Below are positions 34,901 to 58,900 of a stretch of 64,000 bases of DNA, one piece after another (the first letter of the stretch is position 1; every line of letters begins with the position of its first letter). Location of the stretch: positions 620,001 to 684,000 of the forward strand of contig NW_025765359.1 of the NCBI RefSeq assembly GCF_003918875.1. The letters are read 5' to 3'. The translations under genes were made by a program, and so were the position numbers. The notes below the pieces were generated by a model, which did not search any database, was not told the DNA's origin, and saw only the letters and a program-made list of their open reading frames with translations. Source of the stretch: Haliotis rubra (taxonomy: Eukaryota).

Positions 34901-37900
34901 ACTCACTACTTGGTTGAGAAGATGGACTCTGCTACTGGTAAAATATTTGCTTTTGTGTTTGGTGTTGCTCTTACTTTACATACAAGAACAGAGGTCACAT
35001 ATGTACTTAGCGTACATTAGCAATTCCATTTTCCTTGATAGCAAAATGTATTTCATGCAAGAGTATCATCATCTTATTTCACCATCTTGAACCAACACAA
35101 AAGTAATGGTTGTCTATAGTCATGAATTTATTTGGCAGATTTTCTTAATTATACTTCCTGTCGGTTATCGTATGTCTTATTGACTTCAGGCAAATGGGAG
35201 CCAGTCTGTGAGACAGATGACCTTGAAGTTGATGTCAGTGACCTGACACCAGGTCACAAGTATCAGTTCCGTGTGGCCGCTGTCAACTCGGAAGGCGTCA
35301 GTGAATATTTACCATCAGACGGAGAAATCCTTGCCAAGGATCCATGGGGTATGTCCTTGATTGTTTTCAATGTCATTTTCCTGCTGAACAGATGGAGTAA
35401 TCTAAGATATACTCACTATCTCTGCAGGTGATCCAGTTTATCATCATGTTTAATACCAACATCCAAATGCACAAATCTCATTCATGGTGTTGCAAGAGCG
35501 ATGCTGTCGACATATTTATTCACACTGTATCAACATCTGCATCTATCTCTTCCAGATCCTTCCGATCCACCAGGAACTCCAGAAATCATTGATTACGACA
35601 AGGACTATGCCGAAATCAAGTTCGACCCACCCAAGAAAGATGGTGGCGCCCCCATCCAGAGTTACGCAGTTGAATACAGAGAGAAGGGAACAGAGGAATG
35701 GAAGAAGGTAAGTCCAACAGGGATGAAGCAAAGCTAGTTCATGAAGTCGAAGAAGAGTCACGTCAGGAACTCTCAGAAATCACTTCAGTTCTGATCCAAA
35801 TTGAAATGCACTAAAATGCAACTGTCCTGTCATGTTGTCCTCTATTGCCACAGGGTACTGACGTTCCCGGTTCAGCTGACACCGCAACTGTCGATGGCCT
35901 TAAGGAAGGCAAAGAATACGAGTTCCGAGTCAAGGCTAAGAACAAGGCCGGACTATCGGAGGGCAGTGAGTGCTCCGGACCTGTGGTCCTCAAGTCAAGG
36001 AGAGGTACTGCTGTTGCTGTTGTAGCTCTTATATCCTTTACATTTTCACATCTTATATCCTTTACAGCTCACACCTTATATCCTTTACATTTTCACACCT
36101 TATATCCTTTACAGTTCACACCTTATATCCTTTACATTTTCACACCTTATATCCTTTACAGTTCACACCTTATATCCTTTACAGTTCACACCTTATATCC
36201 TTTACAGTTCACACCTTATATCCTTTACAGTTCACACCTTATATCCTTTACAGTTCACACCTTATATTTACAGTTCACAAAATACCTGGGTTTTCAGAAT
36301 ATTGAGGTTATACTGATTTAATATGTATAATTGATGAACAAATTGTAGTTAAGTACATACTGCATGTTTTACCTTGACTCAGAAAAACAGTCACATTCTT
36401 TGAAAATTTAAAATTTAAAATCACTTCAAGGCATTAAAAGAAACTCAAATGCCACATAAAGATACACAATAACCACAATCAACAAATGCTTGTCTCTATA
36501 CTGTTTTGCGTTTCCTTGCAGTTAAGCCCGTATCAACCACCAGGATGTCACCAAGAAGATTCAGATTAAGGCCGGGCAGCCCTTCTCTATCCCTGTCACC
36601 TATATTGGCGAACCAGCACCCAAGGCAACATGGACTGTCAAGGGACTGGTACGTTTCTGCTGACATTAGAATCTTTCTGCAGAACCATGACAATACGATA
36701 TGACCTTCTGGATGAAACAACCTTTTGTCACGTTTGTTTCAACATTATTGTCCACTAACAAAATTATTTCCTGGCAATATTTTTACAATATTTTATATTT
36801 AATGTCCCAACTCATACAATGAAGAATCAAGATTTAACAACATTGATTTATGTGATTTATTGATTTATTCAAGCGATAAAGAAATATAGAAAATAAATAA
36901 ACAAGAATCCACATCAAAACAAATATGAATATATTTATTCAAGCAGTTATACAAAAGTATTTGTAATCCAGACGGCATATCGGCTTGTGATGGTTGAATG
37001 TTTCTGACAACACGCTTGATGCCCTTTCTGCAACTGCAGTGGACGTGTGTTGCCTACTGTTTTCCTATCTAAATATTTTGTTCTGTAAACGTGTTCCACG
37101 ATATAAGCCTGTATGGCCTATATATTCTGTTTTGTGTTGGAAACTTGTGTTTCCGTGTCTCATACATGTGCTATATATGTTTCCCTCCTTTCATGTTGAC
37201 AGAAGTGTCTGAATGCTGTTTTCAAAAATTTGACATTATATCACAGCATGTTAGAATATTGGGGGAGAAAGGTTATGTGATTAATACCATAGACGCTTAC
37301 CATTTGGAAATCTGCTCAATTCACTTTTTTAATTGAAAAATAATGTAAAATTCATGTTTTAAGAAACCATTACTATTTTGAGATTTGGCAACCTCGCTTT
37401 TGGAACCATTAAGGTAATTCTGCTTCACTTTTTTGAAAAGTTGTAAATTTTCATAAACAGGAATGGGAATATATTTTTTATTTTTGTAAAACTTTGAACT
37501 GTTGAAAGAACCTTGAGCATTTAAATTTTCCTGTTGCTTATATGGTATTGTTCAGTGATCAACCCATATATGTTTCCTGTGGGGTGGGCACTGGGTGTAC
37601 TTGTGACCACTGGGTGTATTCGTGACCACTGGGTGTATTCGTGACCACTGGGTGTATTCGTGACCACACAGAGTGTACTTGTGAGCACACAGTGAGTATT
37701 TGTGAGCGCACAGTGTGTTTGTGACCACAGATCACAGAAACTATTTTACCTGTCTTTTAATCATTGCTTCAAATCCCATCTTTTCATGCTGAATGTTCCA
37801 TCACGTTGTGTTGAAAATGTCCTGATTTCATGCTGGATATCTCATCTATCTGTGCCTTTTTGCCCAACAGGATGAACCGGTAAGTGTGGCTGTAACGTGT

Positions 37901-40900
37901 TACATATAAACATGATATAGCCTAGCTTAGAAATACATCTATAATCTGTCTAAACCTGTCTACATGTCTAGAATGTCTAAAGCCTGTCTATACGTGTTGT
38001 CTATTTGTGTTGTCCATAACGTGTCCGAATGTAATCTGTCTAAAACCTCTTTGTATGAGGATATGTTGTTTTAAACATGTTCTGTCCAGAGGTAACATTG
38101 TATTACTGTCTTCTGTTCAGAGGTAACTTTGTGTTACTGTGTTCTGTTCAGAAGTAACTTTGAGTTACTGTGTTCTGTTCAGAAGTAACTTTGTGTTACT
38201 GTGTTCTGTTCAGAAGTAACATTGTGTTACTGTGTTCTGTTCAGAAGTAACATTGTGTTACTGTGTTCCGTTCAGTGGTAACTTTGTGTTACTGTGTTCT
38301 GTCCAGAGGTAACATTGTGTTACTGTCTTCTGTTCAGAGGTAACATTGTGTTACTGTCTTCTGTTCAGAGGTAACATTGTGTTACTGTGTTCTGTTCAGA
38401 AGTAACTTTGAGTTACTGTCTTCTGTTCAGAGGTAACTTTGTGTTACTGTGTTCTGTTCAGAAGTAACTTTGTGTTACTGTGTTCTGTTCAGAGGTAACA
38501 TTGTTGTGTTACTGTCTTCATGTTCTAACCACTGACTTTCTTTACAGAGAACTTCTTCAAAGTGTGTAGACATACCCTTTCACAAACTGTCGGGAATAAT
38601 CTTCCTGTTACTTTGAAAATTTTGTACATTCTCTTTGACACAAAAACAACGCTGATCTCAAAGGACCGACTGCAATGTTTTAATTTGGTCGATAATTCAA
38701 AATGATTAGGAATTTTGTAGCAATCAAACGATCTGGGTTTTTTTGGCTGAGAGCACTGGAATGGTTTGACTGAAGACAACAATGTAGATGTAAAACAAAA
38801 CTGTACTCCAAAATAATCTTGAGGTTCGACACAAAGTGTCGATATCTTAATCTGAGCCAATACTGATAGCATGTAAAAACAATACAATCATATGAAGACA
38901 AATAACTTGAGAGTGGCCTTACCTGTCCGGTAAGCATTTCGGAGATGTGATTTTCAAATATTCACCATCCATCCAGATTAACTTTTGACTTCCAGGGCAT
39001 TTCGGAGATGTGATTTTCAAATATTCACCATCCATCCAGATTAACTTTTGAATTCCATCAAGTTGTTATTGTCCCTGACAGTGCAGGTCTACACACTTTA
39101 ACTATCTACAATCTTTCCTAGTCTTTCTAACCCCTCCTCCAGCCAGACTCTGGCTCAGTCTTACTGTCCTGAGTTGTCTGTAAACTTTCAGATGGGACCT
39201 CCTGGTTCTGTAAGTAACTTACACCATGACCCCCTCACTCACTCACCCAACATCACCCACCCTGCTCATCATGCAACCTTCATCACCCATGCCTCATCAC
39301 CTTCCACATCACCTCTGACCACAAGCTGGAGGGTTGAATGTTAATAATCCAAACAAATAAAGCATGACGTCTTGCTTTTGAATTATTCATATTCAACAGA
39401 AGTTGTTCGTTTTAAGCCTCACTACAGCTATGTGAAGGTTGGGTCAGTGCCAGTGTGAACTGTATAGACCTGATGATAAAGTCTTGGAGTGTTCGATGTT
39501 CATGAAGGTTCTGGTAATAACATTTTATGGTGTGAATAGCGACTTCTTTATTGCCACTTTTGTGACGTATTGGTGCAGATACAAATGCCATATTTATTCA
39601 ACAGTTAATCTAATCATTTGAGTTTATGGTCTGAAAACTGAATAGAATAAAAAAATCTAAAAGTATTTTCTTTGAATGTCTTGATGGTTGGCAGAGAGAT
39701 AAAACAAATTATTAACAAAAGTGTCACTTTGATGCTTTCTTTATTGAAAGATTAAGCATCTGAAACATATATTGATCTAATTGAGATATGGTATTTCAGT
39801 TTTTGTTTTGTATTCAGTAAATAGATAAGTGAACTAAGAAACTAGATATACGTCTGAAGTGGTAGTATCAACTCTGAACCATGTCACATATATATGAAGT
39901 GGCTGGGCATACCATTGCTTGTTATGACCTTGACCTTGCATGAGAAACAGACCTATGGTACACATAGCGCCAGGTTTCGGAAAAAGATGTTTTCTGTGTC
40001 TGGCCAAATCACAGAAACCTGCATAAAAGTTAGTGGACTTGTGAGGGTCGGGTTAGACGGTGCCAAATTCTCTAAAGTGATTCAACTAAAATAATAATAA
40101 CTACCATTCATTAACAGAGACCTATGCAGCACAAAGATCACTTTGAAGAATGAGGCAATACGAAGGTCCATTCCATGTTCCTGGTGTAAATTAGGTTACT
40201 ATCATCCATTAATGCAATACTGTTATCATGTACATTACATACTCCCCCTTTGAAAAATCTGAAATCTGATCTTGAAGAAAAGTGTCATCAGAAAAAGAGA
40301 TTATATATATTTCACATCGTCTTCAAGAATTATTCTGTGAGAAATTTGGATGCTCATCAAAAGAGGCAGACTGTGAATTGATGCTCAGCTGTTTACAACT
40401 GCATCACTTAAGACGGTGCTGTTTCTTCATCGTTTTTGACATATTCCTGTTGTCAGGCCATGCATTTCTAATCCTTGCTGTTCAGTAATGTTCAAGTTCT
40501 TGTTCTTTTAATCATTCAACTGGTATTCTTCACTTTCTGCTGTTTCGGTCAAGAAAGCTCTTCTTTCACATCAAGGCCATTTCTTGCTCTGTCGTGAACA
40601 ATGGTGAAAAACAATCACTTGTGTCTCATTCTTCCTCTACATGAAACATTATATTGATGTTGAACTGATAAGCATCATCCAAAAACTTTAAAATAGCAGC
40701 CTGCCCCGATACCTCCATCAGTTGAGAACATCAACCTATCTGTACCTGCCTGAAACCTACGACTGTAATCTTTGTATCATGGGGAAATTTTATCAGCATC
40801 TTCTTGCATCAGTGTCTTAGCTTAGTCCATGAATCGTCCTTCATGATGAACTTTGATCACTCTATCAATACCTGCCTCAAACCTACAATAGTAATCTTTG

Positions 40901-43900
40901 TATTCTGAGGAAACTTCATCAGTGTCTTCTTGCATCATCATCTTAGCTTAGCCCATGGATCATCCTTCTTGATGAACGTCATATTTTCACCAGTACCTTT
41001 GACCAACTTCAGATCAACCTTCTTCAGTTGGCCAATCTCAGAATGATACATCCCTTCCTAAACCCAGGCCCTCTCCATGTTCTCTCCAGAGGTGCCCTGC
41101 ATCATGGGCAATCCAAACATACATGTTTAATGAAACACTAGCTGTGTTTGATGTTAAACCTGTCAAACACTGAACTTGAACCACAATTATGATTCCATTT
41201 AGAAAATGGTCATATGTAACATATATTATATTTGGGATTACACTTTCTAAGTAAAGTACAGATTCTACTACTTTTGTTGGGTTGAGTCCCATCCGGGATT
41301 TGAACCCACACCCTCAGAGTCAGGTACCTAATCGCCAGCACAAAGGTCAGATGCCTAACCCCCTCAGTGGACGCCATGGTGACTGAGTGGGTTAGGTACC
41401 TGAATCTGAGGGTGTGGGTTCAAACCCAGCATGGGACTCAACCCAACACAAGTACTTGAATCTGTACTTTACTGAGAAAGTGTAACCCCAAATGTAACAT
41501 ATGTTACATTTATGATTGCATGATGTGTTGAATGAGGGATTATATATGGTCCCAGGGATTATGAATCAGGTTAAGCTGTTTCTATAATACATTAATTTTT
41601 GTTTAAAATATTAACTTTTTTGCAATAAACATCTTTCCAACTTAATTTGTACCAAATGCACACAATAGTTAGTGTCTAACTGTTGTTTTCTGGATGAACA
41701 CTGTATTGGTGTTTATTTCTTAATATCAGCTATTAAAACATTCCATGAAGATGTACTTATCAGGTATTAACTCACAGCACTATGTTTATTGACATATATC
41801 CTTTTGGATTTAACACATGTAACCTTTTGGATATAACATTTATAACGAAGGCAATATGACATATTGACATATTTAACATTTATATATAATGCCTATAACA
41901 TTGGGTATATAACATTATAACATTGGGAATATAACATTTATAACATTGGTATATAACATTTATAACATTGGGTATATAACATTTATAACATCAGACTACA
42001 TTTATAAACTGCAGATTAAAACATTTAACCTTGTGGATACATGTATAACATTTATAACACTGGGGATGTATTATGTATAATCTTTAGGATATTACATTTA
42101 TAACCTTTGGGATATAACACACACAATTTCTCTTTTTTCCACATACAATTAATATCAATGTACACATATTAAATATTTATTTCAATGGCTTTCTTGACAG
42201 CTTTTAAGGAGTTAAACATGTTTTATGAAGAAGTGTACATACAACGTTATCAATTACCTTATTAACTTGAAAGACTGTATTCTGTTTCCGGGCCCGGAAA
42301 ATCTTTGTCATAGATAAAGTTATAGAGGTGATGAGAGGAATTATTTGATGTCAGAATTATGAATTAGATTATCAAAAGTTGGTGTACAATTATATGACCA
42401 ATAGACAATGTTAATTGATATGTATGATCTTTGTGTTGAAGGTAGTCTATCCAAATGAGTTTTACTGGTGTTTATAATATGTTGTGTAATACTTGTAGGC
42501 TGGAACTGAGATTCCTCTCGAACCATCAGAGAAGGTGGCTATCAATAACGAGCCAAAGAAGTCGACTGTGGACAACAACAAAAGTGTCAGGAAGGACACG
42601 GGTCTCTACACCATTACTGTTGCCAACAAGCATGGCCAAGATACAGAAACAGTGGAAGTTGTTGTCCTTGGTGAGTGGTAACCTTCACCTAGGGGGGACA
42701 ACTCTGAAATCAGTACACTTTTTGATAAAAAGCAAAGGATACTCAGGGCATAAAAATGATTTGGTAATTTGTCAAATATTGAAGATTATATCACCTCTTC
42801 TTTCTATCTGGATCATATTTTTTGTATTATTATTTTATTATGATATTATCATAACACATTACCTTTACTTATATGTTAATATCCTCGACCCATTTCTCTT
42901 ATCAAAATCTTGGCACATAAGTTTCCTCACTTATGTATGGTCTTTGATTGCATAGGTAATTTTAGCATTGTGGAATTTGAATCAGACAAAAATGAACAAA
43001 ATGGCACCAAAAAATATATATCTGATAAATATACTGAATAATTGAGGATGCACTTCTTCTGATGGCGAATGAAAGGTGCTGTTAATCCTATCTGGTCTAG
43101 TCAATGGGATCCTAAAATCTGAAACCACAAATGCTTTTGTTCTTTAAATATAGAATTTCATCATCGACTGTATTCAAAAGTGTTAAAGTGCAAATCATAC
43201 TTTCATACTATATGAAGATATATGTTTCAACTGTTCTGTTACCCAGGTCCACCATCAAGACCATCTGGTCCACTGGCTGTCAAGGATGTAACCAAGGATA
43301 GCGCCACTTTGAGCTGGAAACCTCCCCCAGACGATGGCGGCAATGATATCACGTGAGTTGAGTACACTCTTGTCAAGAAGAAATAAAAGAATCATTTGAC
43401 ATTTCTATGAACACATCAATGCATAGATTGATTCTCATGATGCAGTCACTGAATTATCTGGTTTGGACTTGATTATTTACAGACTGTTGTCATATACAAC
43501 ACTCGTTATATTTTGAATGACACTTTCTCAGTAAAGTACAGATTCTTGTACTTTTTGGGGTTGAGTTCCATGCAGGATTCGAACCCTCTCAGAGTCAGGC
43601 ACCTAATCGCCAGCACACAAAGTCAGATGCCTAACCCCCTCAGTGGACGCCATGGTGGCTGAGTGGGTTAGGTACCTGAATCTGAGGGTGTGGGTTCAAA
43701 CCCAGCATGGGACTCAACCCAACAAAAGTACTTGAATCTGTACTTTACTGAGAAAATGTAACCCCAAATATAACATATGTTACATTTATGATTGCATGAT
43801 GTGTTGAATGAAGGATTATATATGGTCCCAGGGATTATGAATCAGGTTAAGCTGTTTCTATAATACATTAATTTTTGTTTAAAATATTAACTTTTTTGCA

Positions 43901-46900
43901 ATAAACATCTTTCCAACTTAATTTGTACCAAATGCACACAGTAGTTAGTGTCTAACTGTTGTTTTCTGGATGAACACTGTATTGGTGTTTATTTCTTAAT
44001 ATCAGCTATTAAAACATTCCATGAAGATGTACTTATCAGGTATTAACTCACAGCACTATGTTTATTGACATATATCCTTTTGGATTTAACACATGTAACC
44101 TTTTGGATATAACATTTATAACGAAGGCAATATGACATATTGACATATTTTAACATTTATATATAATGCCTATAACATTGGGTATATAACATTATAACAT
44201 TGGGAATATAACATTTATAACATTGGTATATAACATTTATAACATTGGGTATATAACATTTATAACATCAGACTACATTTATAAACTGCAGATTAAAACA
44301 TTTAACCTTGTGGATACATGTATAACATTTATAACACTGGGGATGTATTATGTATAATCTTTAGGATATTACATTTATAACCTTTGGGATATAACACACA
44401 CAATTTCTCTTTTTTCCACATACAATTAATATCAATGTACACATATTAAATATTTATTTCAATGGCTTTCTTGACAGCTTCTAAGGAGTTAAACATGTTT
44501 TATAAAGAAGTGTACATACAACGTTATCAATTACCTTATTAACTTGAAAGACTGTATTGTTTCCGGGCCGGAAAATCTTTAGATAGATAAAGTTATAGAG
44601 GTGATGAGAGGAATTATTTGATGTCAGAATTATGAATTAGATTATCAAAAGTTGGTGTACAATTATATGACCAATAGACAATGTCAATTGATATGTATGA
44701 TCTTCGTGTTGAAGGTAGTCTATCCAAATGAGTTTTACTGGTGTTTATAATATGTTGTGTAATACTTGTAGGCTGGAACTGAGATTCCTCTCGAACCATC
44801 AGAGAAGGTGGCTATCAATAACGAGCCAAAGAAGTCGACTGTGGACAACAACAAAAGTGTCAGGAAGGACACGGGTCTCTACACCATTACTGTTGCCAAC
44901 AAGCATGGCCAAGATACAGAAACAGTGGAAGTTGTTGTCCTTGGTGAGTGGTAACCTTCACCTAGGGGGGACAACTCTGAAATCAGTACACTTTTTGATA
45001 AAAAGCAAAGGATACTCAGGGCATAAAAATGATTTGGTAATTTGTCAAATATTGAAGATTATATCACCTCTTCTTTCTATCTGGATCATATTTTTTGTAT
45101 TATTATTTTATTATGATATTATCATAACACATTACCTTTACTTATATGTTAATATCCTCGACCCATTTCTCTTATCAAAATCTTGGCACATAAGTTTCCT
45201 CACTTATGTATGGTCTTTGATTGCATAGGTAATTTTAGCATTGTGGAATTTGAATCAGACAAAAAAATGAACAAAATGGCACCAAAAAATATATATCTGA
45301 TAAATATACTGAATAATTGAGGATGCACTTCTTCTGATGGCGAATGAAAGGTGCTGTTAATCCTATCTGGTCTAGTCAATGGGATCCTAAAATCTGAAAC
45401 CACAAATGCTTTTGTTCTTTAAATATAGAATTTCATCATCGACTGTATTCAAAAGTGTTAAAGTGCAAATCATACTTTCATACTATATGAACCGAAGATA
45501 TATGTTTCAACTGTTCTGTTACCCAGGTCCACCATCAAGACCATCTGGTCCATTGGCTGTCAAGGATGTAACCAAGGATAGCGCCACTTTGAGCTGGAAA
45601 CCTCCCCCAGACGATGGCGGCAATGATATCACGTGAGTTGAGTACACTCTTGTCAAGAAGAAATAAAAGAATCATTTGACATTTCTATGAACACATCAAT
45701 GCATAGATTGATTCTCATGATGCAGTCACTGAATTATCTGGTTTGGACTTGATTATTTACAGACTGTTGTCATATCATATACACACACTACAGATTCTTA
45801 TACTTTTTTGAATGACACTTTCTCAGTAAAAGTACAGATTCTTGTACAAAATGGAAGTTTTTGGGGTCAAGAGTTCCATGCAGGCTTCGAACCCTCTCAG
45901 AGTCAGGCACCTAATCGCCAGCACACAAAGTCAGCAATCTAGCCCACTCAGCCACTGCGGCTTATACAAAGTGGAAGTTTGACAAATGGTAGTCAAGACC
46001 ACATACTCTGTGTAGCCCTCATACAAGTGAAAATTGGCGGTTCCAATGGCCAAAGCTATGAATACACAAGGCAGTTTAGAGATATTGCTGATTGAGGCAT
46101 TAAACAACAAACAAAGCCCAAAAATTCATCTAAATGTTTATTTCTGTGCAGCAATTACCGTGTGGAGAAGTTTGACACGAAGAAGGGCAAGTGGGAGAAG
46201 GTTGCGGATGCAGTTGGAAAGAAGTGTGTTGTTCCAAAACTTCAAGAAGGCCATGAGTACAAGTTCCGCGTCATTGCCGAGAACCGCAATGGAGAGTCCG
46301 AACCCCTGGAGACTGAGGATCCCATCACAGCCAAGAATCCATTTGGTATGTGTTTTTAAATGTTAGGGTTTTTATTATATCTTAGATGTTACTATTGCCT
46401 GCATGGAATTTTGTGTCTGCAGGCGAAAATTTGTCCAAGAAATAGAGCGTCTGCCCAGAGCTGGGAAGTTTAGTGTTCTCTTGGCAAGAGATAGTTGAGC
46501 TAGTGTCATGCCTGGTTTTCAGCATTAAGGAGAAGTACTGGTCAGCTTGGGGTCAGTGTAACATGTTTGAAAGGATAGTGTCCAATTGAGCTAGCCGAAG
46601 TTTGCACTGTACAAACGACACACACGTGTATGTGCTCCTGTATCGGTGAAATAGTCTTTGACGTAACATTAAACCGCTTTTCACCTCGAACCTTGTATTT
46701 AATGACACTCTCGCTTTTCTTCCAGATGAACCTCTACCTCCTGGTCAGCCCCAGATCACAGACACTGACCGCAACCACATCGACATGAAGTGGGACCCTC
46801 CAGAGGACGATGGTGGTGCTCCTGTCACCAGCTACGACATCGAGAGGAAAGATCCCAAGTCTGGTCGCTGGGTCAAAATCAACAAGGCTCCAGTGGAGGC

Positions 46901-52900: not shown

Positions 52901-55900
52901 TGAAAGGAAAAAAAGGATTTATCCAGGAAACACAGAAAAAGTACCTATGGTCTTATAGGAATGGTCATATCTTGAAAACTCTTGAAACGTTTACTTTGGT
53001 TAATGTGATGTTTGAACATGGTTAATTTTCACTTCTTTGAGCGGCATTATAGAAATTGGGAAGTACAATATTGACAAATTTGTGGATCACACTCACACTC
53101 ACAAAATAAAAGAAGTTGTTATCCATAAATTTGTCAGTATGGTTAATAATGAAATGAGAATTTTCACTGACGTTTTTTAAAAACATACAGCCAGAAATTG
53201 TTTTCTCATAAAATAAGGGGCAGTGGGGTAGTCTACTGGTTAAAGCGTTGGCTCATCACGCCGAAGACCCAGGTTTGATTCCCCACATGGGTACAATGAG
53301 TGAAGCCCATTTCTGGTGTCCCCCGCCGTGATGTTGCTGGAATATTGCTAAAAGAGGCGTAAAACCAAAACTCAGTCAGTCAGTCATAAAATATGGATAA
53401 GTCCTTTCAAACATTGTTTCAACTCATGTTGTCAGTTTTCTTATTTCTCCATCAAACAAATCACTTTGTAACTAACTCTTGTGTACACTGTGATCTAGAT
53501 ATTAGATATGTTATTCTTACATTGTTTGCATCTGAGATATAAGATAGTTTTTATTTTTCTGTTTGCGTATTTTCATATCAACTGCCAGGTAACAGAGAGT
53601 ATACATCCATGGTGATGCATTAACTATGGTATCACATGGGATGCCTACATTATATCACTCTCAAAATGGGTTGTGTTTTTGGCCTGAAGTTTACAGTGTT
53701 TGGGGAATTCTTTGTGCTCATGCGAGCCGTGCCAATTTACACTTGTCAGAGGGAACACAAACTATCAGGTCTAGACTACCAGTCGTCAGACTTCCATTTA
53801 TTTGGAAGAAACGGTGGCTGAGTGGGTTAGATCGCTGATTTTGTGTCTTGGTAATTTGGTTCCTCACTCTTAGAGTGATGGGACACAAACCCCCAGAGTA
53901 CTAGAATCAGTACTTTCTGAAAAAGTATAATCCTGAACATAACATATGCAATGTTTCAGCACAGTACCATTTATACTTTCTTTTGCCTGTCAGTTTACAT
54001 CCATCTTGAAGTATATGTTTCACGTAATTAAATATTTTGCTGTCTTATGACTAACAAGATGAAGTTAAAAAATCTTTTCCGATGTTGGTAATCAGGCCTG
54101 ACCAATTTAGTTTCAAGTTTATCATATGAACAATTCCAGTATGTTGTTACGTTCACACAGAGACCATATGGTTAAAACAAATTATCATAAAGTCCTTGTT
54201 TCAACAGGCTGTGGGCTCATGTGGCCAAGTAGCCTTACCACAATTCACTGTGCAGGGTTGCCTCCCTTTTATACAATGGGTTTTTTCTGTATCTACGAAA
54301 TGCTTGTTTCACTTCCTGATGATTGTCGGATAAAATTACACAAGAAATTAAATGGTCTGGCCTTGTCATGTAATCCTAATACGTTGATTTCATAGCAAAT
54401 GTTGTGATAAATATGATGCATGTAAGGTTGAAGAAGACGACAATTTCTCCATCATATAGCACTAACATCTCTGTTTTATATTGATATGGGGATTCTTATG
54501 TATACTCTGTTTNNNNNNNNNNNNNNNNNNNNNNNNNNNNNNNNNNNNNNNNNNNNNNNNNNNNNNNNNNNNNNNNNNNNNNNNNNNNNNNNNNNNNNNN
54601 NNNNNNNNNNNNNNNNNNNNNNNNNNNNNNNNNNNNNNNNNNNNNNNNNNNNNNNNNNNNNNNNNNNNNNNNNNNNNNNNNNNNNNNNNNNNNNNNNNNN
54701 NNNNNNNNNNNNNNNNNNNNNNNNNNNNNNNNNNNNNNNNNNNNNNNNNNNNNNNNNNNNNNNNNNNNNNNNNNNNNNCGTATTTACCATAAGAAGTACC
54801 CAAGGCACTTTTTTTATGAAGGGGACACCTAATAAAACCTTATACTGCAAGTTAAAATTTGTCTAATGTGTAAACTTTCCAACTTGGCATTTATTAAGCT
54901 GATGTACAGACAGGTCTGGAGGTTGACCAGAGGGATCCTACTGGAGCAGGGTTGTTACTATGGTCAATACGGTAGTGAGTGCTGGGTGACAATAATATCG
55001 AATGTGTCATTGTGACAACATGTAATTGTAGATGCGAGTGAAATCTTTGTAGAATCATATAAACCTATTTGTAGGTGTGAAATCACAGATACATAGTGTG
55101 TGAAGATAGAATCTTACCTAATAAGAGGTGTAGTTTGTGTATTCATGAATAGACATAATATGTGTGATCAAACTGACACTTTTAGGTGATATAGACAGAA
55201 ACTCATGGCAACAGTTTGTGACTTTTCTATTTGTCTCTAACATCACCAATAGGAGCACTTAATTGTGAAGCACTTAGTCAAGATGCACTAAGTTAAGATG
55301 CACTTAGTTGAGATGCATTTAGTCAAGAAACAAAGAAACAATCTTGAACTAATAGGCTAGCCATTTGTTGACAAAATTTAGATACCTATTGTCAAATATG
55401 GCTAGATTTTTACATATATTTAGAAAATTCAGTGTGTTCATTCTGACCTTCTAGCTCGGAGAAGATCTCGCTGTCCTGGCTGTTGCCAAGTCAAAGCGCG
55501 AAGATGCTGGCCGATACTCTCTGACCCTGAAGAATCCATCTGGATCAGAAACCGTGCTTCTCAATGTCAACGTCCTTGGTAAGTAGATGATGAAGCTGAG
55601 ATGCATAAAAGATTGTAAAAGGTTATTCCTTGAAGGCGTTTCTTTCATGTGATATAAATCAGAATTTCCATGTCACATCTTGCTATCATGTTGTTTGAAA
55701 ACTCATTTAATTCTTATTATCGTGTTCAATTATTTTTCCATACCATATTCTCTGTGATTGTGTGAAGTGCTTTGAAAATTAAGTCTGGTTGGTTCTTTTC
55801 AACCATAGAAGAGAGAATCGGCTTGGTTCAAATGAAGATATTTTTTATAATGGTTACTTAGTAATTACATACTCCTACAATGCTTGTTTCTTTCTGCTAA

Positions 55901-58900
55901 ACAATCTGCACCATATCCAAGAAAATACGTACTGTCATGTCTGGGGTGTATGTCAGGCTGTCTCACATTGAAACAAAGACAAGAGTGTTAGTTTTCACGT
56001 CATGTACTTGCTTCAGACAAACCCAAGCCTCCAAAGGGACCGATCACCGCATCAGAAATTGATGGTGAATCCATGACCTTGAACTGGCAAGCTCCCGTGG
56101 ACAGTGGCGGTGAGCCCATCGCCAACTACATCGTGGAGAAGCGCAAGGCCGGCAGCAACCGGTGGCAGAAGGTCAGCAAGCTTCGTGTCCAGCCCCAAGT
56201 GCACCGTCAGGAACCTGGAACCCGGGGAGAAGTACGAGTTCCGCATCATGGCTGAGAACTCTCAGGGCGTCAGTGAGCCACTTGAGACAGATGAAGCTAT
56301 TCTCTCCAAGCTGCCATTTGGTAAGAAGCATTTTCAAATATTGTGAAGTATACAAAAGAAACAGTGTAGCGTGGTTGTTGTTTAATGCCCAGTTTAATGG
56401 CAGCAGTCTGTAAATTCTTTAGTCTGGACCAGGCAATCCAGTGATAAAGAGTCAAGTAATATATTTTCTATGACAAAAATAGTCAGGTTTTAAGTATGTT
56501 TTTCTCAAGTCTTTTATACAATAAACTAATATTTATAACAAGCACACTTGCTGTCTAATTTATGCGTAAAACAAACAATAGTTGTAATGAATGGGGATAA
56601 TGATGTTCTCAAAATGTTTAAGTTCAATTTAAGGTCACTAATAGTCATTACACAAAATAATGCTTGTTTATATGGTTTTGTTCTAATCATCTTCATATGT
56701 TCATAGATCCCCCTTGAGCTCCCAGCTCCCCCAAGAGTATTGGAACCACCGAGGACTCCATCACCTTGTCATGGAACCCACCCAAGAGAGATGGTGGCGC
56801 CGAGATTCTTGGATACCAAGTGGAGAAGAGAGAAAAGGGAGATAACAAGTGGACCAAGTAAGTGGCGCCGATGGACAGTTACATGACCAAGTTCCTGACA
56901 GACAACTTCAGTGCTGTGCTTCTGCTATTGTCAGTTATTTATGAACCATGCAGTATGATATAAACCACAGAACATACAAAATTAATTCACCCAAACAAAT
57001 AATTATTAATTAGCTCATAGGTCTATGTTACATATAGGACTTATAACAGTTGTAGTGCTGAGATCACTCAATTTTGAGTCAACATTGTCAGTGTGGTTTG
57101 TTTTATCAAAAAGATCCATTTAATGAAAGGTTTGTGGAATGGGCTTTTATCAATGGTTCACAAGTTGAGGTTCAACGTTATCCATCACGTTCATCAGTTA
57201 TATTTGTTTGTTTGTTGTTTTATGCTGCACTCACCAATATTCCAGCTATATGGCAGCAGTCTGTAAATAATTGAGTCTGGACCATACTATCCAGTGATCA
57301 ACAACATAGGCATCGATCTACGCAATTGGGAACCGATGACATGTGTCAACCAAGTCAGCGAGCTTGACCACCAGACCCCGTTAGTCGCCTCTTACAACAA
57401 GCATGGGCTGCTGAAGATCAATTCTAACCTGATCTTCACGGGTTATAACAGCAAATAGATGACAGTAAATGTAGATTATGCCTATAACCAATGTATGCTT
57501 TGACATGGCCAGTATATTGTCACTGATTATTCTGACACTAACTGTGTTTGTTGTGTCTTGCAGGGCCAATGTGTCTGACATCAACGACACAGAATACACA
57601 GTCAAGGGTCTGCAAGACGGCAAGGACTACGAGTTCCGCGTGTGTGCCGTCAATGCCGCTGGGCCCGGAGAACACAGCGAGTGCTCCGATTCCATCAAGG
57701 CACAACCACCTCCAAGTAAGTCAGTATACTATAGAGATGAGACTTCTGCAGAATAAAGCCAGCTGCATCCTGATGATGTACGCATCTGATGCCTTCAGTG
57801 AAGATATACTGCCAGTAAAAAGACAGTATACACCATTCTAAATGCTGGCTAACATTTGGCGAAAGATGAATGGTTATTTGTTAGTTTTGCAGTTGATATG
57901 GTAGAATAGCTGCCTTCTACCCCTGAAATTTGCATGGGTTTAGTTCAACTGCTTCATTTGGGTAACCTTGAAATTTAAGTGTTTGTTTATTATGCCTCAA
58001 TCCATGTTCAAATCCCATCATGGTTTCAATGCTGGAAGCCCAAGTATGGTATCCTCTGCCATCAGATGGGTTGTATGTTTCTCAAAGTTCACTCCATTGC
58101 TGTTCCCTACTTCCGAGTTGGTGGGGTAGCCTAGTGGTTAAAGTGTTCACTTGTCATGCTGAAGACCCGGGTTGATTCCCCACATGGGTGAAGACTATTT
58201 CTGGTGTCACCAGAAATATTGTTGGAATATTGCTAAAAGCGGTATAGAATAAACTCACCCACCTTATTTCCAAGCCTTCGTGTGGTGTTTTCTCTATCAC
58301 TGTGGTGAAAGTGTGTCAAGTCATATTTTATGATGTTGTTCCCAGTGGCACCAAAGATCAACCGAGACTTTGCAATCCGTGACGTTGTAGCCAAGGTTGG
58401 AGAACCATTCAAGATATCCATTCCATTCAATGGCAGACCTATACCTACCGCCGCCTGGACTCAGGTCAGTCTCCTCAAACCTTCTTAATAAGAAGCAAAG
58501 ATTCTGGTGGAAAGAATAAATATAAAAGTGACGGAAGGACCAGTACAAATTCAAGTCCAAGACTGAAAAACTTTCACTTTTAACAAGCATTTTGTTTACT
58601 TGATGATTAGGCTAATGACATATCGGAATGATGATGATGATGATGATGATGATGACGATGATGATGATGATGTGTTGCAGGGAGGTCTCACAGTACATGA
58701 GACAGATCGTGTTAAGTTCAGGAACGACCCCACGGAGATCTTGTTGCTCAACAAGAAGGCCGAGAAGGGAGACACAGGCAAATACACCGTGTTGTTGACC
58801 AACGAGAAGGGAAGCGACTCCATCTCACTCAACGTCACTGTGTTCGGTAAGTTTGTCCCTAATACATACAGTAACCACATTCAGTTCTGACAGCTACCTG

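Follow-up and report, generated by a model that had tools for sequence, protein, structure and literature searches.

A long intron divides one Ig domain of a twitchin-like gene

We analysed a stretch of 64,000 nucleotides (nt) of the Haliotis rubra genome, hereafter the window (assembly GCF_003918875.1, contig NW_025765359.1, positions 620,001 to 684,000 of the forward strand; coordinates below are those of the window). On its + strand, exons that each encode half of an Ig or fn3 domain follow one another; they belong to a twitchin/titin-like giant gene and are colinear with twitchin-like loci of other molluscs. The subject of this work is an 18-nt coding microexon (39192-39209, + strand) that lies in a long intron inside a single Ig domain of this gene, together with the G-poor, UCAY-rich block (39224-39322, + strand) that follows its 5' splice site and is a candidate intronic splicing enhancer.

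The constitutive exon upstream of the intron (36527-36648, + strand) encodes the first half of an I-set Ig domain, with ...WTVKGL as its last residues and an end in phase 0. Position 36648 is exactly where RNA contigs end or join, and the intron opens with gtacgt at 36649. The downstream exon (42499-42670, + strand) encodes the second half (AGTEIPLEP...) and is entered in phase 0, with RNA contigs starting or joining at 42499. The Pfam I-set profile was compared with each exon half separately. The upstream half matched profile positions 6-38 with 17.4 bits, under the cut-off for the half alone, and the downstream half matched positions 39-90 with 27.6 bits, over the cut-off of 23.7. Since the halves occupy these two parts of the profile, the 5,850-nt (5.85-kb) phase-0 intron divides one I-set Ig domain, just past the conserved strand-C tryptophan. 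The exons neighbouring the split domain encode fn3.

The 18-nt microexon is spliced into mRNA

The microexon and its borders read ...aaactttcag-ATGGGACCTCCTGGTTCT-gtaagtaac, exactly as in the initial annotation of this DNA, which had described an 18-nt exon between ttcag and gtaagt. Its length is within the 30 nt that delimit microexons and is a multiple of three; it is flanked by AG and GT, is in phase 0 on both sides, contains no stop codon and encodes MGPPGS. The flanking introns measure 2.5 and 3.3 kb. The 3' splice region (39150-39191, + strand) has the acceptor tttcag and a polypyrimidine tract of moderate quality (pyrimidines at 12 of 20 positions), and cttac, about 28 nt before the acceptor, may serve as the branch site; no UGC motif of the neural-microexon type occurs within the last 40 nt before the acceptor. 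The 5' splice site (GTAAGT, 39210-39215, + strand) is full consensus on the intron side.

Transcript evidence came from four small sequencing runs in which only the exonic part of the window's words is present and which were taken as RNA. De Bruijn contigs, not reads, were placed on 36576-42575. Long contigs covered the flanking exons and continued into further twitchin exons, and depth was zero over introns except at a repeat resembling a short interspersed nuclear element (SINE). In run X3, 36648 and 42499 are connected in one contig (GT..AG, 5850 nt skipped) through 18 letters, which are those of 39192-39209 at 17 of 18 positions, the sole change, CCT to CCG, being synonymous. The 18-mer is unique in the window, and no 17/18 match is expected by chance. 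In run X2, a contig holds 36576-36647 and 42499-42575 separated by 19 letters, whose identity was not seen. In run X1, the upstream contig stops at 36648 precisely, as if the assembly graph branched there, and the downstream contig begins 9 letters before 42499, just past the polymorphic base of the microexon. We infer that the downstream break reflects an allele bubble inside the microexon and the upstream break some alternative continuation.

Because the X3 contig joins the two exon ends through a 17/18 match to the microexon, the exon is used, and we regard it as practically certain that it is a genuine exon spliced into mRNA. The initial annotation had named an exon that is never included as grounds for giving up its reading, and the X3 contig disposes of that objection. 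It could still be supposed that the 18 letters stem from elsewhere (an assembly artefact, a paralogue or another locus) and that 39192-39209 is a chance splice-site look-alike, considering that the runs are only guessed to be RNA, that their contigs are de Bruijn products and that the insert is one letter off the window. This is scarcely credible, as the matched string occurs only once in the window, has AG before it and GT after it, and stands in frame between the exact exon ends 36648 and 42499. An insert was moreover seen in two runs, separate samples of one study, and the region is single copy in the genome.

These results support MGPPGS as an in-frame, Gly/Pro-rich insert at the C-C' junction of the I-set Ig domain, a placement that we take from general knowledge of the I-set fold. 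A Gly/Pro-rich insert within this Ig domain had been proposed from the initial reading of the sequence, and its position between the two I-set halves agrees with that proposal.

A UCAY-rich block starts 15 nt past the microexon donor

The block spans +15 to +113 of the microexon, about 100 nt, and contains 16 YCAY tetramers, of which 11 are UCAY, and four copies of CAUCACC. Counted with overlaps, 16 YCAY per 115 nt is the highest value that the + strand of the window reaches, where the mean is 2.3 and the runner-up has 9. No other such cluster occurs on the gene's strand within 64 kb, and this one stands directly beside the microexon. The 116 nt after the microexon are 45% C, 28% A, 21% T and 7% G, in a neighbourhood where 2-kb bins have about 37% G+C. 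The very dense, C-rich YCAY cluster that had been noted immediately after the exon was thus recovered. No other CATCACC clusters were found near other exons of the window. On the minus strand, the YCAY maximum is equal in count and lies near 58600-58712; this stretch, which closely precedes an Ig half-exon, is a (GAT)n run, a plain microsatellite whose translation would be poly-Asp.

Shuffling separates composition from motif. With single-base shuffles of the stretch, 6.1 +/- 2.0 YCAY were obtained and none of 5000 shuffles reached 16 (P<0.0002), whereas dinucleotide shuffles gave 10.6 +/- 1.8 (P about 0.002-0.004). About two thirds of the YCAY count is therefore a matter of composition (G-poor, CA-rich), and the remainder is motif-specific. 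Of the motifs tested, UCAY showed the highest enrichment, with 11 occurrences where dinucleotide shuffles gave 4.3 (z = 4.5). For the heptamer CATCACC, four copies compare with an expectation of 0.25, and for CAUC or CACC 12 copies with 7.2 (z = 2.55), P being 0.09 for CAUC and 0.08 for CACC taken singly. Motifs of the CA-repeat type bound by hnRNP L are depleted (z = -2.1), and C-triplets of the PCBP/hnRNP K type are at expectation (z = 0.2). No Fox sites (GCAUG) were found in the block, and YGCY and PTB motifs are few.

In a genome background of 200 kb drawn from 17 contigs and scored on both strands, at least 16 YCAY per 115 nt were reached only in a (TCAC)n microsatellite, and the best non-tandem frames held 12-13. 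This scoring against the genome, which the initial annotation had recommended, leaves the cluster exceptional among non-tandem sequence. Its description as non-tandem also holds, as Tandem Repeats Finder reported no array in 39210-39325 at a score of 30, although the block is internally repetitive, with three TCAC units, the four scattered CATCACC and one pair of 21-nt segments, 76% alike and 30 nt apart. In a search of the 1.38-Gb genome that skips very common words, the segments 39150-39350 and 38540-39191 had no match besides themselves. An origin of the block as a dispersed repeat or transposon fragment, the other ground on which the initial reading was to be abandoned, is ruled out by this single-copy status. 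Upstream of the microexon, by 135 nt, two tandem copies of a 63-nt unit that are 98% alike occupy 38934-39057, also within single-copy sequence.

In the minimum-energy and centroid folds, the YCAY block is predicted to be fully unpaired. Both folds also contain a predicted 8-bp helix between 39136-39143 (5' arm, + strand) and 39327-39334 (3' arm, + strand), which may enclose the microexon and the block in one loop; the helix is weak and may be due to chance.

These figures bear on the simplest alternative, in which the exon is real and the C-rich block beside it is neutral, being a decayed (TCAC)n/(CATCACC)n slippage product or a local duplication, while the GTAAGT donor and an adequate acceptor suffice for constitutive splicing. 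The three TCAC units, the fourfold CATCACC and the direct repeat at 30-nt spacing fit such an origin. So do the (TCAC)n microsatellites of this genome, which give equal or higher YCAY counts, and the 10.6 of 16 YCAY that composition alone yields. Against neutrality stand the enrichment of UCAY beyond dinucleotide content and the location of the block, the sole such + strand cluster in 64 kb, 15 nt from the donor of a verified microexon; we estimate that positions at such a short distance downstream of a microexon candidate make up about 0.5% of the window. In addition, tiny exons between kilobase introns generally need flanking enhancers (for an example, see PMC12445529). We consider a neutral block doubtful, though nearly as credible as the enhancer reading set out below.

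The same intron in other molluscs

Orthologous loci were reached through single-exon gene calls from other molluscs. Three loci of distant species (L053, L054 and L058) have exons colinear with the window at 55-80% protein identity and share the phase-0 intron. Five others were set aside for the intron comparison, L060 because the upstream exon is absent within 10 kb, and L052, L055, L059 and L062 because they are too short to span the intron. A library search with the downstream exon retrieved other molluscs' single-exon gene calls and distant titin-like giants, and no near-identical twitchin. Protein-word searches aimed at close relatives, with the downstream exon and with the open frame that runs from the microexon through the cluster, gave no match, and a search with the preceding fn3 exon returned one unrelated 70% fragment only (P0130).

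In the nucleotide alignment of the abalone intron with L053, only the exons align. No GPPG-coding string, as expected of the MGPPGS exon, and no non-tandem YCAY cluster were found in the introns of L053, L054 and L058; the one frame with a count of 11 YCAY, in L054, is a (CA)n/(TCAC)n microsatellite. At this evolutionary distance, the conservation check that had been suggested for the cluster thus showed no counterpart of it in the three loci.

Instead, each of these three introns holds one strong 18-nt phase-0 candidate of the form tctag-GAY CYK RAS ACR GGN RWA-gtaaga, at L053:6651-6668, L054:5445-5462 and L058:3650-3667, with the peptides DPDTGV, DLDTGK and DLKTGK. This putative microexon, known from sequence only, is followed by a flank rich in U and G, not in YCAY. 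Applied to the 200 kb of abalone background, the same search rule returned no 18-nt candidate, and the form conserved among the other molluscs is therefore not due to chance. A related candidate occurs at L062:922-936 (tctag-GAT..., with the donor 15 nt on).

Within the abalone intron, the only candidate to pass the strict splice-site rule is a 9-nt one that would encode DEP (37871-37879, + strand; cag-GATGAACCG-gtaagt). It was not found in the RNA contigs seen, and the 18-letter insert of X3 leaves no room for 9 nt more. It shares its initial Asp codon with the candidate of the other molluscs and has weak flank similarity to L053, L054 and L058, and it may be the orthologue of their conserved microexon. 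About 200 nt downstream of it, a tandem array occupies 38078-38504 (31-nt unit, 13.8 copies, 92% matches). The MGPPGS exon has only length, phase and a Gly at position 5 in common with the conserved candidate. It is either its diverged orthologue or a second, lineage-specific abalone microexon with its own flank; we lean towards the second, without proof. That an older, conserved candidate microexon occurs at this point of the Ig domain too suggests that this loop is a functional hot spot.

The block as a possible Nova/Pasilla-type enhancer

Nova binds clustered YCAY, and binding just downstream of an exon enhances its inclusion, a map that holds also for Drosophila Pasilla (PMC3165201). The arrangement in the window follows the enhancing part of this map, with the 16 YCAY of the block at +15 to +113, the highest count of the strand and beyond dinucleotide expectation. 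The genome itself encodes a Nova/Pasilla orthologue, to judge from two of the three KH hits that lie within 5 kb at G000:C2190:3070011-3074940 (~3.070-3.075 Mb; L042, L030). Its KH1 and KH2 match human Nova-1 (2ANN) best, with 68.9 and 83.5 bits against 38 and 61 for PCBP2, and far better than PCBP2, IGF2BP or hnRNP K. A separate hnRNP K orthologue is present at G000:C2345:455579-455746 (L022), where a KH exon matches best the third KH of hnRNP K (74.7 bits).

With 18 nt, the exon is too short to carry enhancers of its own, and it is bordered by introns of 2.5 and 3.3 kb; its recognition would for this reason most likely be helped by the block, which is about 100 nt long, G-poor, predicted to be unstructured, single copy and 15 nt past the donor. 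KH-domain proteins would load on the repeated UCAY cores and, once there, would favour the use of the neighbouring 5' splice site and the excision of the intron that follows. Taken jointly, the two propositions, that the block is an intronic splicing enhancer of this real microexon and that it is of the Nova/Pasilla type, make a possible reading that we favour, though tentatively, the activity of the block and its reader being inferred from motif content and position.

Several observations weigh against this reading. No exon-skipping junction (36648 joined to 42499 without an insert) was found in the four RNA-type runs, where contigs show presence rather than absence and can hide minor forms. 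Only inclusion was seen, and the microexon may be constitutive in the sampled tissues. This agrees with a neutral block, as does the missing cluster in the three molluscan introns. The absence of both exon and cluster there weakens the case for Nova but does not refute it, because L053, L054 and L058 are too distant for intron conservation to be expected. The (TCAC)n microsatellites are native to the abalone genome, and with its three TCAC units the block is possibly a decayed repeat or slippage product. The share of the YCAY count that composition explains belongs on the same side. No second YCAY cluster was found towards the 3' end and branch point of the downstream intron, whose last 200 nt hold a single YCAY. 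Twitchin is a gene of muscle, whereas Nova in vertebrates is chiefly a neuronal protein. Lastly, the repeated unit CAUCACC corresponds to the YB-1 motifs CAUC and CACC overlapped (PMC3458536). Of the Nova-family control proposed in the initial annotation, the YCAY cluster at the enhancing position and the encoded Nova orthologue can be retained; the lack of a branch-point cluster and a repeated unit that suits Y-box proteins as well speak against it.

The last point opens a further alternative, a functional intronic enhancer that is read by a single-strand RNA-binding protein other than Nova. The leading candidate would be a Y-box (cold-shock domain) protein on CAUC/CACC, with an SRSF3-like protein (CAUC) as a weaker one. 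The excess of CAUCACC (four against 0.25) and of CAUC or CACC argues in this direction, and PMC3458536 defines both as motifs of YB-1 through which exon inclusion is stimulated. It is generally known that many tissues, among them muscle, contain Y-box proteins in abundance. Nevertheless, the enrichment of UCAY exceeds that of CAUC/CACC, and neither CAUC nor CACC is significant singly. The YB-1 mechanism described in PMC3458536 is exonic and acts on the upstream acceptor, not from the downstream intron; here all CAUC and CACC are intronic and the microexon has none. Among other readers, those of CA repeats (hnRNP L type) and CCC (PCBP/hnRNP K type) are disfavoured, as their motifs are not enriched. 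A functional block with a reader other than Nova appears to us rather unlikely, somewhat less probable than a neutral block.

Repeats and duplications elsewhere in the locus

Part of the intron and the exon that follows it occur twice in the assembled sequence. The segments 41313-43626 and 43588-45934 form a tandem duplication of about 2.3 kb with 97.5% identity, which holds the downstream Ig half-exon twice, the second copy lying at 44772-44943 and being 97.5% identical to 42499-42670. The duplication may be real, or the assembly may have placed two haplotypes one after the other. Of the duplicated half-exon, just the first copy lies inside the region on which the RNA contigs were placed. The repeat mentioned above with the transcript data, at 41195-41520 inside the intron, reaches RNA contig depths of thousands and gives numerous variant contigs and loose ends in each of the four runs; it behaves like an abundantly transcribed SINE-type family. 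Further downstream, 54513-54778 consists of 266 N, an assembly gap or masked sequence.

Significance and comparison with known systems

Twitchin controls the catch state and the relaxation rate of molluscan muscle, and to our knowledge almost nothing is known of isoform variation inside its Ig domains. The verified loop-editing microexon offers a concrete site for the study of such isoforms. Should the block be a working enhancer of the Nova type, the Nova/Pasilla map would be extended to Lophotrochozoa and to a non-neural structural gene; we know of no lophotrochozoan Nova/Pasilla target described so far. A more far-reaching scenario, which we regard as speculative and improbable as a whole, would have the Nova/Pasilla positional code act in a lophotrochozoan muscle gene, where abalone evolved, next to an older microexon that begins with Asp and is kept by other molluscs, a lineage-specific six-residue Gly/Pro insert in the C-C' loop together with a YCAY enhancer for it. 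In that case the Ig loop would be a cassette open to tuning, perhaps specific to a muscle type, through which the docking of twitchin on the thick or thin filament is modulated.

Four known systems can be set beside the abalone exon. The neural microexon programme driven by SRRM4/eMIC uses UGC close to the acceptor. Its exons resemble the abalone one in having at most 30 nt and a multiple of three, and in adding residues to a surface loop of a folded domain. They differ in that the abalone exon has no UGC in the last 40 nt of the upstream intron, belongs to a muscle gene and has its conspicuous element downstream rather than upstream. Exon activation by YB-1 shares with the block the unit CAUCACC, two YB-1 motifs overlapped and present four times in abalone, whereas the sites described in PMC3458536 lie in exons and act on weak polypyrimidine tracts ahead of them, and the abalone motifs are intronic and downstream.

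The two remaining systems concern Nova and Pasilla. As regards their splicing map, a Nova orthologue is present in the abalone genome, while the site near the branch point of the downstream intron, which half of such Nova exons also have, is missing (PMC3165201). In the Z microexons of Agrin (Ciona Z6 and Z5, mammalian Z8 and Z11), tiny in-frame exons add a short loop peptide, as in abalone (PMC12445529). The Ciona exons have 6 and 5 codons, so that Z6 equals the abalone exon in length, and they depend on YCAY clusters in the downstream intron; the dense YCAY just downstream number 18 in Ciona and 16 in abalone. Agrin has two clusters and the abalone exon one. Mutation of YCAY showed that the Agrin clusters are needed for Nova-driven inclusion, whereas the role of the abalone block is proposed from its nucleotide sequence. 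Moreover, the Agrin exons are neuron-specific cassettes with proven skipping and Nova dependence, while the abalone exon belongs to a giant muscle protein and was seen only as included. A microexon followed by a YCAY cluster is a known type of arrangement, of which this is a new member; its interest lies in the host, a molluscan muscle giant, and in the structure that the insert edits, a loop of an Ig domain.

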